NCBI RefSeq assembly: GCF_006345805.1
Contig: NC_042998.1
Coordinates: 156,550,001 to 156,614,000 of the forward strand
Reading direction: 5' to 3'
Length of the DNA stretch: 64,000 bases
Source of the DNA: Octopus sinensis
Lineage: Eukaryota
Below the pieces are notes generated by a model. The model saw only the letters and a list, made by a program, of their open reading frames with translations, searched no databases and was not told where the DNA came from. The first letter of the stretch is position 1, and the number at the start of each line of letters is the position of its first letter. The position numbers and the translations under genes were made by a program. This document shows, in pieces, positions 19,601-29,300 of the stretch.

Positions 19601-20015
19601 AATAAGTTTATTAATTATAAGTTAAATTAATTATAGGGCGAAGTTTCGTATGTCGTAGATCAGATTTCCGTCGATTTCCGTAAAAAATTTTTATTTTTTT
19701 ACATAAGTAATGAGAGCGAAAGAGACTAAGAGGAAGCGATTTTACGACGAGAAGGTTTCACTTTAAAGTCGGCCTGTGTGCGTTTGATGGGGTGTGGGAG
19801 ACAGACAGTATGTTGTGTAAGTGAAGTGCTTCTGTTAGTGTGTGCGAAGAGACAGAGAGAGTAATGTGTGAAAGAGAGAGATAACTGATTTTTTACTCGG
19901 TGTATGTGTATATGTATGTATGCATGTATGTGTGTGTGTGTGTGTATGTATCTATGTATGTGTGTGTGTAAGTATGTGTGTGTGTATGTATGTATGTATG
20001 TATGGCCGAAAGAGG

Positions 20016-20352
20016 GTGGGACATTGAAATTGTAGCAGTCGTTTTGATAGTGATTCCTTGGGTTGTTCTGTTGATGACAACTGATGTGCTTGCTTATATT
20101 AAGACCCAGAAGGATAGATATATCATTGAGAACAATAAATTTAGTTGATTTAGCTTATGGTGTACTAGAAGAGGTTAGAAAGGGTCAAGTGGTGAAGACA
20201 TTATTTCGGCCTAGCTAAAGGCATCTGGAAAATGTAAAACTGCTGCCAGAGAATAACGATTCGCGACACATTAAACAAAAAAGGTTAAAACAATATTTTT
20301 TTTTCTTTTACTTGTTTTAGTCATTAGACGGCGTCCATACTGGAGTGCTTAT
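20016..20352. repeat. Inverted duplicate of 24833-25168
   Basis: About 336 bp, only one substitution and one 1-bp indel seen; contains a SINE tail and a Penelope-like block. Confidence 0.93.
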
Positions 20353-21304
20353 TTTTTTAAAGTCTGGTACTCGTTCTATCGGACTTCTTTTGCCGAACTG
20401 CTAAGTTATTTATTTTTTAAATGGCATCATTGAAATAAAAGAACAGTGGTGTGGGCTAAGTCGGTGGAGCGTTCGACAAAAAGCCACGCGCTCTTTTAGC
20501 TGTGTGTCCGAGGGAATTTCGAGTTGAGAATTTTTAGGGATATGTTTCCTTGCTTCAGTCAATAGATTGCGGTCAAGCTGGGGCACTGCCTTGTTGAAAA
20601 AATAGTCTTTCTTCTTCCAAACGTAATTACAAGTGTTCCAGAATATGGAATAATTCCTTAAAATAACGAAAGATAACGAAAAAAAAAAAAATTCATTTTA
20701 ATTGTGGCAGTTATTCCGAAGGAGCGATGGTGGGAGGGGGCAAGTTTGTAAAAACATGAATTTTTGAAAATTTTTTGTTACAGTGCAAATTACAGTGCAA
20801 ATTAATCGCCATATGGGTGATCCTTCGGTATTGATCTGCATGAATGTCAGTCATTTACTCTCTTTATCAGCTTAGTCCCTTTCTCTGTCATTATTGAAAA
20901 TTGTGTGGTGAATGTCTACCAATACCGAAAGATTGCTTTACAGGTGTTTTAGATTGTCTTACATGTGTTTTCTTGTAAAAATGACAGCAAAAAAATAGCG
21001 AGAAAAATTGAAGAAATTCCATTTTGTGTGAGACAGTTATTCGGAACGAAATTCTATCGTGTGCCTTAAACATTTTGAGTTCAAATCCCGCCACGGTCGA
21101 ATTTGCTGTTCGTCATTTCGGGGCTCGATAAGATAGAGTACCAAGAGTACCAATCAAGTACTGGGGTAATCGATTGCTGCTCTTCTCAGGAGCCATAAAC
21201 AAATACACGTTGTCAGTTGACGTAAACGGTACCAGAACCGTAACATCGCCTACTTTTCTAGTGCATAGTTTTCTAGTGTATATATATATATATATATATA
21301 TATA

Positions 21305-24690: not shown

Positions 24691-25419
24691 TATGTATGTA
24701 GTATATATATAATATATATATATATATATATATATATATACATATATATATATATAGATATATATATATATATATATATATATATATATATATATATATT
24801 AAATTGAAGGAAGGTATGTGTGTGTGAGATATATAAGCACTCCAGTATGGACGCTGTCTAATGACTAAAACAAGTAAAAGAAAAAAAAATATTGTTTTAA
24901 CCTTTTTTGTTAATGTGTCGCGAATCGTTATTCTCTGGCAGCAGTTTTACATTTTCCAGATGCCTTTAGCTAGGCCGAAATAATGTCTTCACCACTTGAC
25001 CCTTTCTAACCTCTTCTAGTACACCATAAGCTAAATCAACTAAATTTATTGTTCTCAATGATATATCTATCCTTCTGGGTCTTAATATAAGCAAGCACAT
25101 CAGTTGTCATCAACAGAACAACCCAAGGAATCACTATCAAAACGACTGCTACAATTTCAATGTCCCACACTGTTTATCACCTTAATACCTTCAACGCACC
25201 TCTGTAACAACTTTGTCTTTCTCCACGATTGAACGAACAGACAGTTTGGAACGTAATATCTTATTTTATTTTATTTTTGTTTTGCACACTAACACACTCA
25301 CAAGCACACACACAGACACACAAGCACACACACACACACACATATCTGGCAACAGACTCTCCTGTACATTTTCTTAATTACTATTAATTACATCATATAC
25401 TCTTCCATAAGATCCCACT

Positions 25420-26333
25420 ATGGCTGGACGATATAGGATTGTTGACTCTGTCCTTTCCGTTGATGCGATAACTCAAAGATCTCACCATATGCGAGACATT
25501 TATGCCATGCGTTACGCGGATTCAACAATCCAATTCCTGGCATCTGTGGGATTGATCCACAATTCATCGGAATGTTGTAATGAGCAGATGTACCTTGCAT
25601 CACGCAATACAGTATCCGATGGGAAAATGTGGAGGTGTACTGTTTGCAAGCAATATCGTAGCATTAGGCGAGACTCGTTTTTCGCGGGTTCACACCTATC
25701 ATTGACTTGTATCCTCGAGTTGATGTATTACTGGGCGATAATTGACTGTAAACAGAAAGTTGTGATGGGCGAAGTTGAAATAGGACGAGAGGCAATTGTC
25801 AACTGGTACAATTACTTCCGCGATGTTTGTGCCATGTGGTGTTTTGACCACCCTGTGCAACTTGGAGGAGAAGATGTTGTTGTAGAGATCGATGAATCCA
25901 AGTTCATGCACAGAAAATATCATCGTGGTACTTATCGAGAAGGCCATTGGGTCTTAGGCATTATTGAGCGCAGTAGTCTGAGATGTGTCTTAGTTCCTGT
26001 GCAGGACAGAAGTGCAGCAACATTGTTGCCCATTATTACCATGTATTGCCAGGAACTAAGATTATCACAGATTCATGGCGAGCATATAACAGCCTACCCA
26101 ACCATTTAACTGTGAACCACAGTGTTAACTTTGTGGATCCCAACGATGCCTCAATCCACACAAACACCGTGGAAGGGATGTGGAGTCATGTAAAATCCAA
26201 TTATCGGAAAATGCATGGAACGTCCGATAATCTGTTTTCGACATATCTGCATGAATTTTGTTGGCGACGTTACAACAGCAGTAATACTTTTATGAGCTTC
26301 ATAAAATGTATTAGACAGTATTATCCTGTATGA
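25420..26333 (+). pseudogene. Merlin / IS1595-like (ISXO2) DDE transposase with one -1 frameshift
   Basis: Zn ribbon C..WRCTVC, SIRRDSFF, VVVEIDESKF.HRKYHRG, WVLG, TDSWRAY, TVNHS.NFVDP, HTNTVEGMW; frame change near 26040. Confidence 0.92.
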
Positions 26334-29300
26334 TTTCAAAAATGTTTTATGAAGTTCATAAAATGTGTTCTGTTGTTTAATTTAGCCTCAAATTCATGGG
26401 AATCTGTATAATTTTATATTTATTATTAATTTCTTCTTTTTGTATCTTAGTAATTTGCATTCCTTTCTTTTCTCCATGCGCCTTTCGGATCTTGTAACTT
26501 TTATGATTTTCGGAATTCTAAAATACCTTTACAAAATTGTCTTCTATTCACGGAAATAACCCGTGCAAGCAAAATTTGGTCTAATGTTTAATTTTTTATT
26601 TGTCTATTTTTTGTAATGGCTTCTTAATTTGGTATTCATTACATTGAGAGTCTGAACCAAATTTTTTTTAAAAATCAAACATGAAAAAATTTGCTACCAC
26701 GCACAGTTGATATTTCCAGTTTCTTCTCTGAAATTTGCTTCCACAATTCATTTTACAGAAATAAGAGAAATGGTTAGAACGAGCTGTAGCTACTTATACA
26801 TATGTAGTGCTTTGAGGGCAACGTGAGTTAACTTCATCACATGGCTTTGCTAAGTCAATTGGTGTGTTTTCCGTTTGACTTAAAACTTTTCCGCGTCTAC
26901 ACACAGACACCACACGAAAACAATAGGTGTCACAGTGATATACCTCTTTTTCTACAGTCGGCCAGAACGAAGAAGTGACAATGCCACCTTCACATTCTCT
27001 ATTGTCAGCATCGAGCATCGGCAGAGAGACGTTATTAGAATACATCAACCACAACGATACAACTGGTTACCCACAACGTGATTCGAACACAACAACCCTG
27101 CCACAATTGCTGACTCCCGAGCCACAGAACTGCAGTCTTCGTTACCTTATCCATTACATTTGGTGAGCTCGACTTCAAAGACTTACTGCTTTAGCATCGC
27201 ATGAACTCTTGAAAACAATTACAGTCCGTGCCAGTCGCATCAACAAGAATTATAGGACACGAACTTTCACGACGCATAGTTTTCAGTTCCATCGTCACAC
27301 GCCCAACACAACACGAAAGGAATGAAGTCACCGACTCAATGGACACACACCAATTACATTCCACATGTACTGCAACCCGATGCACAGATCCACGAGGGAA
27401 ACAGTTGCCATACATAAATGCAACACTTAGGACAGCTACCCAACCAAGAGAACTAACCTTTTCTCACTTTTCAGCATAAACTTTTCACACAGAACATTAC
27501 CAATCGGATTTTGTCACTTTTCCTTACACATTTTGTACTGTTCGTTCCTTTTGCTGCACAACACAATGTTTACACATGCATATATATGCATGCTTGCACC
27601 CAGTTTCTGTGCACCTCTATAGACTATTAACTTTTTTTTTCCTTTGAATGCAACTCTTTTCTCATGAGAAGAATATCTCCTCATTTTATAACTCTCCCAT
27701 CTTTTTCTTACCATTTCACCATCGTCACATCAACAGAGACATTAAGGCTGCACAGTAGCAGTCGACAAGGCATGTATAACGATTAAATAAAAAAAATTTT
27801 GTCTATATCTTCGATCACTGTCATTATTCCATTGAGTCAACCTCATTATTTTCTACATAGCAGACTGTTACATAAACAGGCGCCGCAAGGTAATCTTTCG
27901 TTTTAATTCGAAATAATGTAAACACTGAATCGGCCATACATACATACATACATACATACACACACACACACACGTACTTACACACACACACATACATGCA
28001 GACATACATATTCACATACACCGAGTAAAAAATTACGATGAATCGGCCATACATACATACATACATACATAAACACACACACATACATAGATACATACAC
28101 ACACACACACATACATGCATACATACATATACACATACACCGAGTAAAAAAATCAGTTATCTCTCTCTTTCACACATTACTCTCTCTGTCTCTTCGCACA
28201 CACTAACAGAAGCACTTCACTTACACAACATACTGTCTGTCTCCCACACCCCATCAAACGCACACAGGCCGACTTCAAAGTGAAACCTTCTCGTCGTAAA
28301 ATCGCTTCCTCTTAGTCTCTTTCGCTCTCATTACTTATGTAAAAAAATAAAAGTTTTTTACGGAAATCGACGGAAATCTGTGCTACTACAACCGAAACTA
28401 TGCCAATTATAGATTAGTAAGTTCCAAATAAACAAAAATAAATAATTGAATAAATAAATATGAATACACACACACACACACACACACACACACACACACA
28501 TATATATAATATATATATATATATATATACATACACATATCCATGTATAGATAAATAGATAAATGAAATGGGATACAAATTAAGGAAGGCATAAAGATAA
28601 ACCTAATATAGTAAGTATATTGGATATACGTTATCCCATAGAGGGTTGCATTTACAGCCCCTATCTCAATTTGTATATATATATATATATATATATATAT
28701 TATATATATATATATATATATATATATATATATATATATATATATATATATATATATATATATATATATATATACACACCTTTCAAATGGCATGCATTAC
28801 GGATGCCTAATGTGCCGCAAACACCTTATTTTTTGTTCGGAAAAAAAGGGTGGGGGAGAAACCGGAATTACTGGAAAATGTATTTCTTTTTTTCGATGAA
28901 TGAATTACGGTAACCTAGACTAACGTGGTTTTTGTAAGGATTTTGTGTCATTCTTTCTCCTGTTCAGACTTCGTTACCACTAATTTTTTGTAACTTCAGC
29001 ATTTTCACTTATTATTCTTTTCAAACTTTGAATTTTCTATCTAATCTACACTCTAGAAAATGTATTTCTTCAAACTGTTATCTGAAAATATTGGTAAAGA
29101 AAAGGGGCTAATGCAGTTTCGCACCTCATCTTCAAAAACGCTTTTATTGGGGTGCCCCGCCTTTTTTTTTTCCGAACAAAAAAGAAGGGGGCGGGGTTAC
29201 TGCACATTAGGCATTCATAGTACATGTGTTTGAAAGGTATTTATATACAATTTCATTAAAAGATATTTATTTTCCTCAATGTTATGGGCGAAAACCTCGG

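Follow-up and report, generated by a model that had tools for sequence, protein, structure and literature searches.

A 64-kb window of the Octopus sinensis genome (CM016860.1:156550001-156614000; positions below are those of this window unless another locus is named) carries an 8.8-kb DNA transposon of the Merlin superfamily at 19637-28404. Comparison of this element with related loci led us to regard it as quite probable that the interval is one disabled copy of a young, multicopy, autonomous composite Merlin of O. sinensis and O. vulgaris. In this composite, an inverted copy of a parental Merlin (module N) and a second copy with the transposase gene (module E) are separated by a spacer, which is mostly a long interspersed nuclear element (LINE). 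The whole package was shown to travel as one unit, with new target duplications at each site.

Movement of the composite as one unit

An initial annotation of the sequence had placed a Merlin element with inverted arms and GG..CC ends at 19637-28404, and all of these features were found there. The element starts with GGCGAAG (19637), ends with ATGCC (28404), and is bordered by an exact 8-bp direct repeat that had likewise been reported (AATTATAG, at 19629-19636 on the left and 28405-28412 on the right). The probability of a perfect 8-bp flank match by chance is ∼1.5e-5 per element. The whole 8.8-kb unit was also recovered at three other loci: L001 (O. sinensis, CM016860.1:154,555,427-154,564,147), L002 (O. 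vulgaris, OX597829.1), and L003 (O. sinensis, CM016861.1). All three aligned end to end with 19637-28404, and homology ended exactly at both termini. Their target duplications (GCAAATCT, GAAACTTT, and CAAGGCTT) were each perfect, 8 bp long, and distinct; with the window element included, four of four young copies thus have perfect 8-bp duplications of four differing sequences. Over ∼8.7 kb, these copies differed by 0.10 to 0.29% substitutions, plus microsatellite length changes, and the interior common to them at their differing sites was 99.7 to 99.9% identical. Unit length varied between 8.7 and 9.05 kb; L002 showed a ∼330-bp expansion in its (TA)n region and a deletion of 55 bp (27882-27936). 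The composite was seen in two independent assemblies. For the insertion point of L001, a paralogous repeat copy in another locus was found to span the junction with a single 8-mer, which represents a paralogous empty site.

Whether the element had moved together with its interior or had accumulated it after landing was left undecided by the initial annotation, which proposed to compare the interiors of other copies. This comparison gave the same interior in L001, L002, and L003. Since four copies share interior and junctions while each has its own 8-bp duplication, the interior moved with the element and was not accumulated after landing. DDE cut-and-paste transposases of the Merlin-IS1595 type bind the arms, cleave at the GG termini, and integrate with an 8-bp stagger. 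In the octopus family, a DDE transposase of 305 amino acids (aa) would bind the arms and cut both outer GG termini; the whole 8.7- to 9.05-kb unit would then be inserted at a cut staggered by 8 bp, and any DNA enclosed by the outer termini would be carried passively.

No further copy of the element was found inside the 64-kb window. The L001 copy and the window element (156,569,637-156,578,404 on the chromosome) lie 2.0 Mb apart on the same chromosome and in the same orientation, with 0.15% divergence. Cut-and-paste elements typically hop locally, and this proximity fits such behavior.

Anatomy and origin of the composite

The interior could be read against L008, an older relative from O. sinensis (87 to 95% identity) that contains no LINE. 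In L008, positions 8233-9524 are the reverse complement of window positions 21266-20009 and form one unbroken block, contiguous with a segment termed B', the transposase core, and the right arm. The sequence GGCGATGTTACGGTTCTGGTACC in L008 proved to be the inverted partner of the right terminus of this locus (3 mismatches in 21; 0 expected by chance). Because the block ends in a paired terminus, L008 holds a complete Merlin of ∼4.9 kb (8249-13182), which we named E1. Its left terminus reads GGCGATGTTACGG, and a short terminal repeat is followed by a 5' region of 1.24 kb (S'), by the core, and finally by the right arm.

Module N (19637-21250, inverted) is a 1.6-kb inverted copy of E1 that lacks the transposase core and has kept both termini. 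It consists of left arm A (19637-20009, plus strand, 373 bp), an inverted repeat of 27930-28404 with the outer terminus GGCGAAGTTTCG, and of segment S (20010-21250, minus strand), an inverted copy of the E1 5' region. A Merlin terminus internal to the element (21228-21250, minus strand, GGCGATGTTACGGTTCTGGTACC) forms the end of S; it is exact in all composite copies and had been overlooked in the initial annotation. Adjoining it is the 3.6-kb spacer (21251-24832), which comprises former E1 flank, a tandem duplicate, the LINE, a (TA)n tract, and 27 bp. The former flanking DNA (21251-21282) starts with 16 bp, tacttttctagtgcat, that are the same as the left flank of E1: positions 8233-8248 of L008 are the reverse complement of 21251-21266. 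An imperfect ∼14-bp tandem duplicate follows. With its units of ∼14 to 16 bp (cttttctagtgcat / gttttctagtgtat), this imperfect tandem duplication separates the internal terminus from the LINE tail; L008 has one copy only. At the other end of the spacer (24691-24832), (TA)n extends to ∼24805 and is followed by 27 bp of unassigned sequence; the length of this region differs among copies, and a 41-mer at the junction is conserved in L001 to L003 and in L007, an older composite from O. vulgaris. Module E (24833-28404) is an E1 copy that has retained the transposase gene and the right arm, whereas the initial ∼900 bp, and with them its left terminus, have been lost. It opens with B' (24833-25175, plus strand), the last 343 bp of the parental S', still joined to the transposase module. 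The Merlin core (25176-27929, plus strand) contains a 5' leader, the transposase coding sequence (CDS; 25420-26333), and a conserved noncoding 3' region (26334-27929), and the module closes with right arm A' (27930-28404, minus strand, 475 bp), whose outer terminus reads GGCATAGTTTCGG on the minus strand.

The outermost parts of the two arms (19637-19894 and 28147-28404; 258 nucleotides [nt]) are 97% complementary; farther in, the arms include a GT/GTAT microsatellite and reach ∼20009 (left arm) and ∼27930 (right arm). In arm A, the unique part spans 19637-19899 and the microsatellite 19900-20003; arm A' owes its length of 475 bp to an internal tandem duplication (27926-28032 and 28039-28151). 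Seven arm mismatches fall in the first 24 nt, and this asymmetry of the ends is common to all copies. The right arm at its inner edge and S at its start have similar short sequences, CAGTGT..ACATT, which may have mediated the loss of the core from N. A left arm reaching to 20352, as initially annotated, holds as Merlin arm to 20009; the rest is a separate 344-nt segment, B (20009-20352, plus strand), which belongs to S and is an inverted repeat of B'. B and B' are 98.8% identical and, in inverted orientation, bracket 4.5 kb. The element has three termini in place of the usual two, and both long outer arms derive from the right end of E1, which explains their unusual length and near-identity.

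With regard to content, the initial annotation had assumed ∼5 kb of foreign DNA. This was an overstatement: ∼1.24 kb of it (20010-21250) is the inverted parental Merlin 5' region, and the foreign spacer amounts to 3.6 kb (21251-24832). Fragments of short interspersed nuclear elements (SINEs) between left arm and transposase were indeed present, in that S contains dispersed-repeat/SINE fragments at 20086-20261, 20293-20408, and 21057-21143 that match sequences elsewhere in the window and at other loci. In contrast, a suspected Penelope-like block could not be substantiated, as no protein domain was detected by Pfam (E ≤ 1) in six frames of 20353-21290. A degenerate Merlin-terminus consensus was found with one mismatch each at 27889-27903 (plus strand) and 2137-2151 (plus strand); ∼0.5 such matches are expected by chance, and these sites were not used. 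The motif at 27889-27903 falls within the 55 bp missing from L002.

The composite may have originated by a local inverted duplication or by alternative transposition at a single E1 insertion, and the left copy would later have lost its core. In maize, alternative transposition of Ac yields composite insertions that behave as macrotransposons (PMC4270019, PMC9910405). A single-locus origin, for which alternative transposition or re-replication may be responsible, is likelier than two independent insertions because N carries the flank of the full-length element, as seen in L008. The designation "Pack-type or macro-transposon" in the initial annotation was half apt: "macro-transposon" comes close to the evidence, as the termini of two inverted Merlin modules bound the element and 16 bp of former flank are enclosed, whereas "Pack-type" is a misfit.

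A classical macrotransposon would arise differently, by independent insertion of an N derivative and an autonomous Merlin in opposite orientation around a host LINE, with the outer ends then used together. N, with both of its termini, does look like a Ds-type deletion derivative, and a spacer that is mostly one LINE could be ordinary octopus intergenic DNA. Nevertheless, we consider this course of events unlikely, since the inner 16-bp flank of N is identical to the left flank of L008, which is unexpected for an independent insertion, and since module E lacks an inner terminus and ∼900 bp.

Pack-type capture, by which a single Merlin, with no second module involved, would have filled an internal gap with host DNA through template switching (gap-filling or FoSTeST), likewise appears improbable. 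S holds SINE and dispersed-repeat fragments, as host DNA does, template switching yields inverted duplications of the B/B' kind, and multicopy Pack-TIRs made in this way, named for their terminal inverted repeats (TIRs), are described in animals (PMC8277862). Our first reading of S was in fact captured host DNA, and it was dropped once the end of S proved to be a Merlin terminus. Together with the adjoining 16 bp, which flank the full-length relative in L008, this terminus indicates that the left half is an inverted element copy and not random filler. Moreover, the family is autonomous, and no host sequence other than transposable elements (TEs) and no parental locus were identified, though no search for a parental locus was made.

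That B and B' could be the TIRs of another transposon (20010-25175) nested in a normal 3.6-kb Merlin was suggested by 344-bp inverted repeats of such identity around 4.5 kb, but has very little to recommend it. No target duplication is present at 20009/20010 and 25175/25176, and B is itself pieced together from a dispersed repeat and a SINE fragment, the latter crossing the inner edge of B. In L008, B' runs on unbroken into the sequence that in the composite adjoins the other arm, so that B is part of a 1.26-kb unit rather than a terminus. L008 and the missing target duplication together ruled out this candidate. Still less credible is an ordinary Merlin that landed and later received nested, locus-specific insertions of SINEs and a LINE: its interior would be expected to consist of retroelement sequence and microsatellites, as is the case, but interior, junctions, and the LINE reading-frame break recur in four copies at differing sites with differing target duplications, interior and junctions recur also in the older L007, and no target duplications were recognized at the LINE ends or at the edges of 20010-25175. 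The multicopy results leave no room for accumulation after landing, nor for segmental duplication or assembly error.

Several points weigh against the composite family as we propose it. Copies were located only via the transposase protein; the number of copies given here is thus confined to loci encoding it, and deletion derivatives, free module N, and cargo-less elements with these arms would have escaped. The orthologous empty site was not reached: the orthologous O. vulgaris locus, L010, could be followed from a phosphorylase gene used as anchor only to a LINE insertion matching window position 17548, which takes up the rest of its 10-kb flank. L008 has no target duplication (GAAAAGTA at 8241-8248 versus ACATAAGA at 13183-13190), and farther upstream than the 16 bp in common, its sequence departs from the composite spacer; L008 may be the birth locus, a duplicate of it, or a rearranged derivative. 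The match to the arm in L006, an older relative from O. vulgaris, is weak (E = 0.001); this remnant lies upstream of the core at a distance of ∼434 bp. Finally, transposase activity is deduced from intact open reading frames (ORFs) and young copies.

The core is conserved in all relatives from L004 to L008. Older relatives, namely, L006 and the two O. bimaculoides loci L004 and L005, share only 25265-27860 with the window element; L004 and L005 are too decayed to yield termini. Because these relatives share the core only and the L006 arm remnant lies so near to it, S is a later addition to the lineage. No left long arm was found in L008 within 8.3 kb upstream.

Passenger LINE, transposase, and recent history of the family

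The 3.4-kb LINE noted inside the element by the initial annotation was recovered on the minus strand at 21283-24690. It has a single-ORF endonuclease and reverse transcriptase with RTE-like architecture (Pfam matches Exo_endo_phos_2, 4e-12, and RVT_1, 8.9e-31) and a 3' tail of (TCAA)n(TA)n at 21283-21335. Size (∼3.2 to 3.4 kb with one ORF of ∼1,000 aa) and architecture match those of the RTE type. The nearest intact relative has a single ORF of 1,033 aa on a 3,221-bp contig and shows 85% amino acid and 89% nucleotide identity. In the window copy, the ORF is broken into pieces at 24511-21995 (838 codons) and 21966-21403 (187 codons). One and the same break is common to all four young copies, and the LINE is therefore a dead passenger; L001 and L003 have an additional 2-bp insertion in it. 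Its target duplication is unrecognizable because both ends abut (TA)n, and the LINE may have belonged to the host DNA of the birth locus or have arrived later. By riding on the composite, the dead LINE spreads at the DNA level, which constitutes a second route for retroelement spread.

The LINE points away from the transposase gene, and its 5' end is located upstream of the start codon of that gene, at a distance of ∼700 bp. LINE and 344-bp inverted segment have both been retained through ∼5% sequence divergence. It is conceivable, if a long shot, that the passenger is not inert and that the LINE supplies an antisense promoter for the transposase or the B/B' stem yields a hairpin RNA that tunes the element's own silencing; in that case, a Merlin of higher fitness would have come out of the rearrangement, would have displaced its parent, and would perhaps be active in living octopuses to this day.

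The initial annotation was also correct in assigning to the element a Merlin transposase with one frameshift. The window gene (25420-26333, plus strand) is split over two frames by a 4-bp deletion (CCCG) after 26038, which is private to this copy and absent from the others. Its C-terminal frame matched PF12762 (DDE_Tnp_IS1595) with an E value of 3.2e-13 in Pfam, and the intact 305-aa protein, P0001, with an E value of 4.1e-21 (76 bits). The DDE residues, assigned by motif, are D158 (EIDES), D219 (ITDSW), and E253 (TVEGMW), separated by 60 and 33 residues. After frameshift correction, the window transposase was 99.7% identical to the annotated 305-aa protein of O. sinensis and O. vulgaris, the one differing residue being at the guessed frameshift junction. 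Intact 305-aa transposases are encoded in L001, L002, L003, and L007, and the 918-nt CDSs of L001, L002, and L003 show no differences, each specifying exactly the annotated protein. L007 (93 to 97% identity) has the same composite layout and junctions as the young copies. Between these and L007, transposase CDSs differed with a synonymous divergence (dS) of 0.062, a nonsynonymous divergence (dN) of 0.013, and a dN/dS of 0.21; the synonymous excess had a P value of ∼3e-4 to 1.5e-3. The transposase is thus under purifying selection, and the intact CDSs together with the dN/dS value against L007 indicate that the composite lineage has propagated on its own transposase. Judged by its sequence, the enzyme is probably active, and the window copy would be able to move only in trans.

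Within the arms, a tandem GATTTCCGT motif at 19663-19681 on the left is mirrored by a ACGGAAATCGACGGAAATC motif at 28360-28378 on the right, and we predict this motif to be the transposase-binding site. It is a candidate because the stretch TTTCCGTCGATTTCCGT, the part of the arm still recognizable in relatives, persists in the arm remnants of L004, L006, and L008, whereas the extreme terminus of L008 differs from that of the young family.

Comparison of the inverted repeats revealed concerted changes. Segments of 15 bp and 19 bp are missing from both B and B' in the young copies and are present in both in L007, and the arm-specific bases beside the B/B' junctions are nonetheless common to the young copies and L007. 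Mirrored complementary variant pairs occur in the set of four at 19746/28295, 19751/28290, and 20051/25133, and three more changes (19642, 19654, and 20060) bring one arm into match with the other. From the mirrored variants and the shared insertions and deletions, it follows that the inverted arms, both outer (A/A') and inner (B/B'), are being homogenized by gene conversion. On a small scale, the copies thereby illustrate in clean form how inverted arms evolve in concert.

In the orthologous flank (window 1-17548), O. sinensis and O. vulgaris diverge by 0.38 to 0.42%. The O. vulgaris copy diverges from the O. sinensis copies by 0.21 to 0.29%, which is below the flank value (Poisson P ∼0.002 to 0.06). 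Since the copies are less divergent than the flank, activity lasted to about the species split or later; the low interspecies divergence could reflect shared activity at a late date, variation in rate, or exchange between species. Three identical intact transposase genes, copy divergence of 0.1 to 0.3%, and a copy 2.0 Mb away make the family a good candidate for cut-and-paste activity that continues in Octopus today; its ends are defined, and its tolerance for cargo was shown directly. The family is also a possible starting point for a cephalopod gene-transfer vector.

Known systems and surroundings of the element

Merlin arms are reported to measure 24 to 462 bp, with 5'-GG termini, 8- or 9-bp target duplications, and ∼50 to 70 residues between the first two conserved blocks of the transposase (PMC8101967). 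All four Merlin hallmarks, a DDE_Tnp_IS1595 domain, the DDE spacing, an 8-bp duplication, and inverted repeats starting with GG, were found in the octopus element. It resembles the superfamily (Feschotte 2004; PMC8101967) in transposase, termini, and duplication, and its arms are within or near the range of 24 to 462 bp. The octopus termini are imperfect, with their 7 mismatches in the first 24 nt, and a Symbiodinium family is more extreme in this respect (PMC8101967). Unlike other members, the octopus element reaches 8.7 to 9.05 kb, has three termini, and contains a LINE and an inverted partial copy of itself. A repeat annotation of O. vulgaris lists two recently active Merlin families with 11 insertions, 29 kb in total and ∼2.6 kb each on average, and describes no composite (PMC13282606). 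In a full-text literature search, neither Merlin macrotransposons nor LINE-carrying Merlins turned up.

The closest parallels are the composite insertions and macrotransposons of maize Ac, in which termini come from two element copies and element sequence is enclosed along with former flank, and which can excise, reinsert with the target duplication of their family, and multiply (PMC4270019, PMC9910405). In the octopus element, too, the bounding termini stem from two copies and outside DNA is enclosed, and reinsertion as a unit is evident from four distinct 8-bp duplications. Unlike Ac, which is a hAT element of a plant whose events come from genetic stocks, the octopus composite is a Merlin in a cephalopod and a natural family: it is represented by at least five copies in two species and has persisted over ∼5% divergence, while its mechanism of origin is inferred and not observed. 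Thus, in a natural animal genome, a Merlin transposase repeatedly moves a unit of ∼9 kb, >5 kb of which is dispensable, and a macrotransposon-like composite can become a self-propagating family instead of a one-off rearrangement. To our knowledge, macrotransposons are otherwise known mainly from maize Ac/Ds genetics. Giant elements of Drosophila bounded by Foldback sequences (FB-NOF, "TE") also mobilize enclosed DNA by long inverted arms; their class is unrelated and they have no DDE_Tnp_IS1595 transposase.

Pack-TIRs carry non-TE sequence between TIR-TE ends, with a median capture of 224 bp, and an identifiable parental copy is required for their recognition; neither Merlin nor molluscs were part of the survey (PMC8277862). 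TIRs, target duplications, a non-native interior, and amplification by transposition are features common to Pack-TIRs and the octopus element, and template switching as in FoSTeST is plausible for the rearrangement (PMC8277862). In contrast to Pack-TIRs, the octopus element carries 3.6 kb of retroelement DNA for which no parental locus was identified. Its interior consists of a LINE, SINE/repeat fragments, and Merlin-derived sequence, with no host gene fragment, and the transposase is intact in four copies; being autonomous, with cargo derived from transposable elements, it is not of the Pack type that the initial annotation had considered. In Turmoil-1 of Caenorhabditis elegans, another DNA transposon, acquired sequence is duplicated in both inverted terminal regions; in that element, the acquired sequence consists of protein-coding host gene fragments, whereas the segment duplicated in the octopus element is its own 5' region (PMC2572040).

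The Merlin region is bracketed by two Gypsy-like long terminal repeat (LTR) retroelements of ∼4.7 kb (10920-15690 and 32899-37624) that are ∼91% identical. These Gypsy-like copies encode reverse transcriptase, RNase H, and integrase, and a partial inverted copy is located at 717-2070. The right copy is annotated as "K02A2.6-like" in O. sinensis, and its pol ORF has no annotated O. vulgaris orthologue; the same family occurs upstream of the Merlin in L008 (4224-7380). In L010, a LINE-type reverse transcriptase insertion that is absent from O. sinensis begins at 20013 (corresponding to window position 17548), ∼2 kb from the Merlin site. Transfer RNA genes were not detected, and Rfam matches were subthreshold throughout and confined to microsatellites. 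Those to mir-297 (19908-19962, 24684-24742, 27933-28001, and 28062-28132) scored far below the gathering threshold and were rejected as low-complexity artifacts of GT/TA microsatellites. Ten other ORFs of the window were not in the protein collection used for the anchor search. On the far side of the left Gypsy-like copy, an unbroken ORF of 835 codons (7555-10062, plus strand) encodes a complete glycogen/carbohydrate phosphorylase (PF00343, 1,074 bits), and the O. vulgaris annotation has the identical protein in the orthologous position (L009 for the window locus, L010 for O. vulgaris). As an intronless copy of a metazoan gene that normally has multiple exons, it suggests a conserved retrogene.

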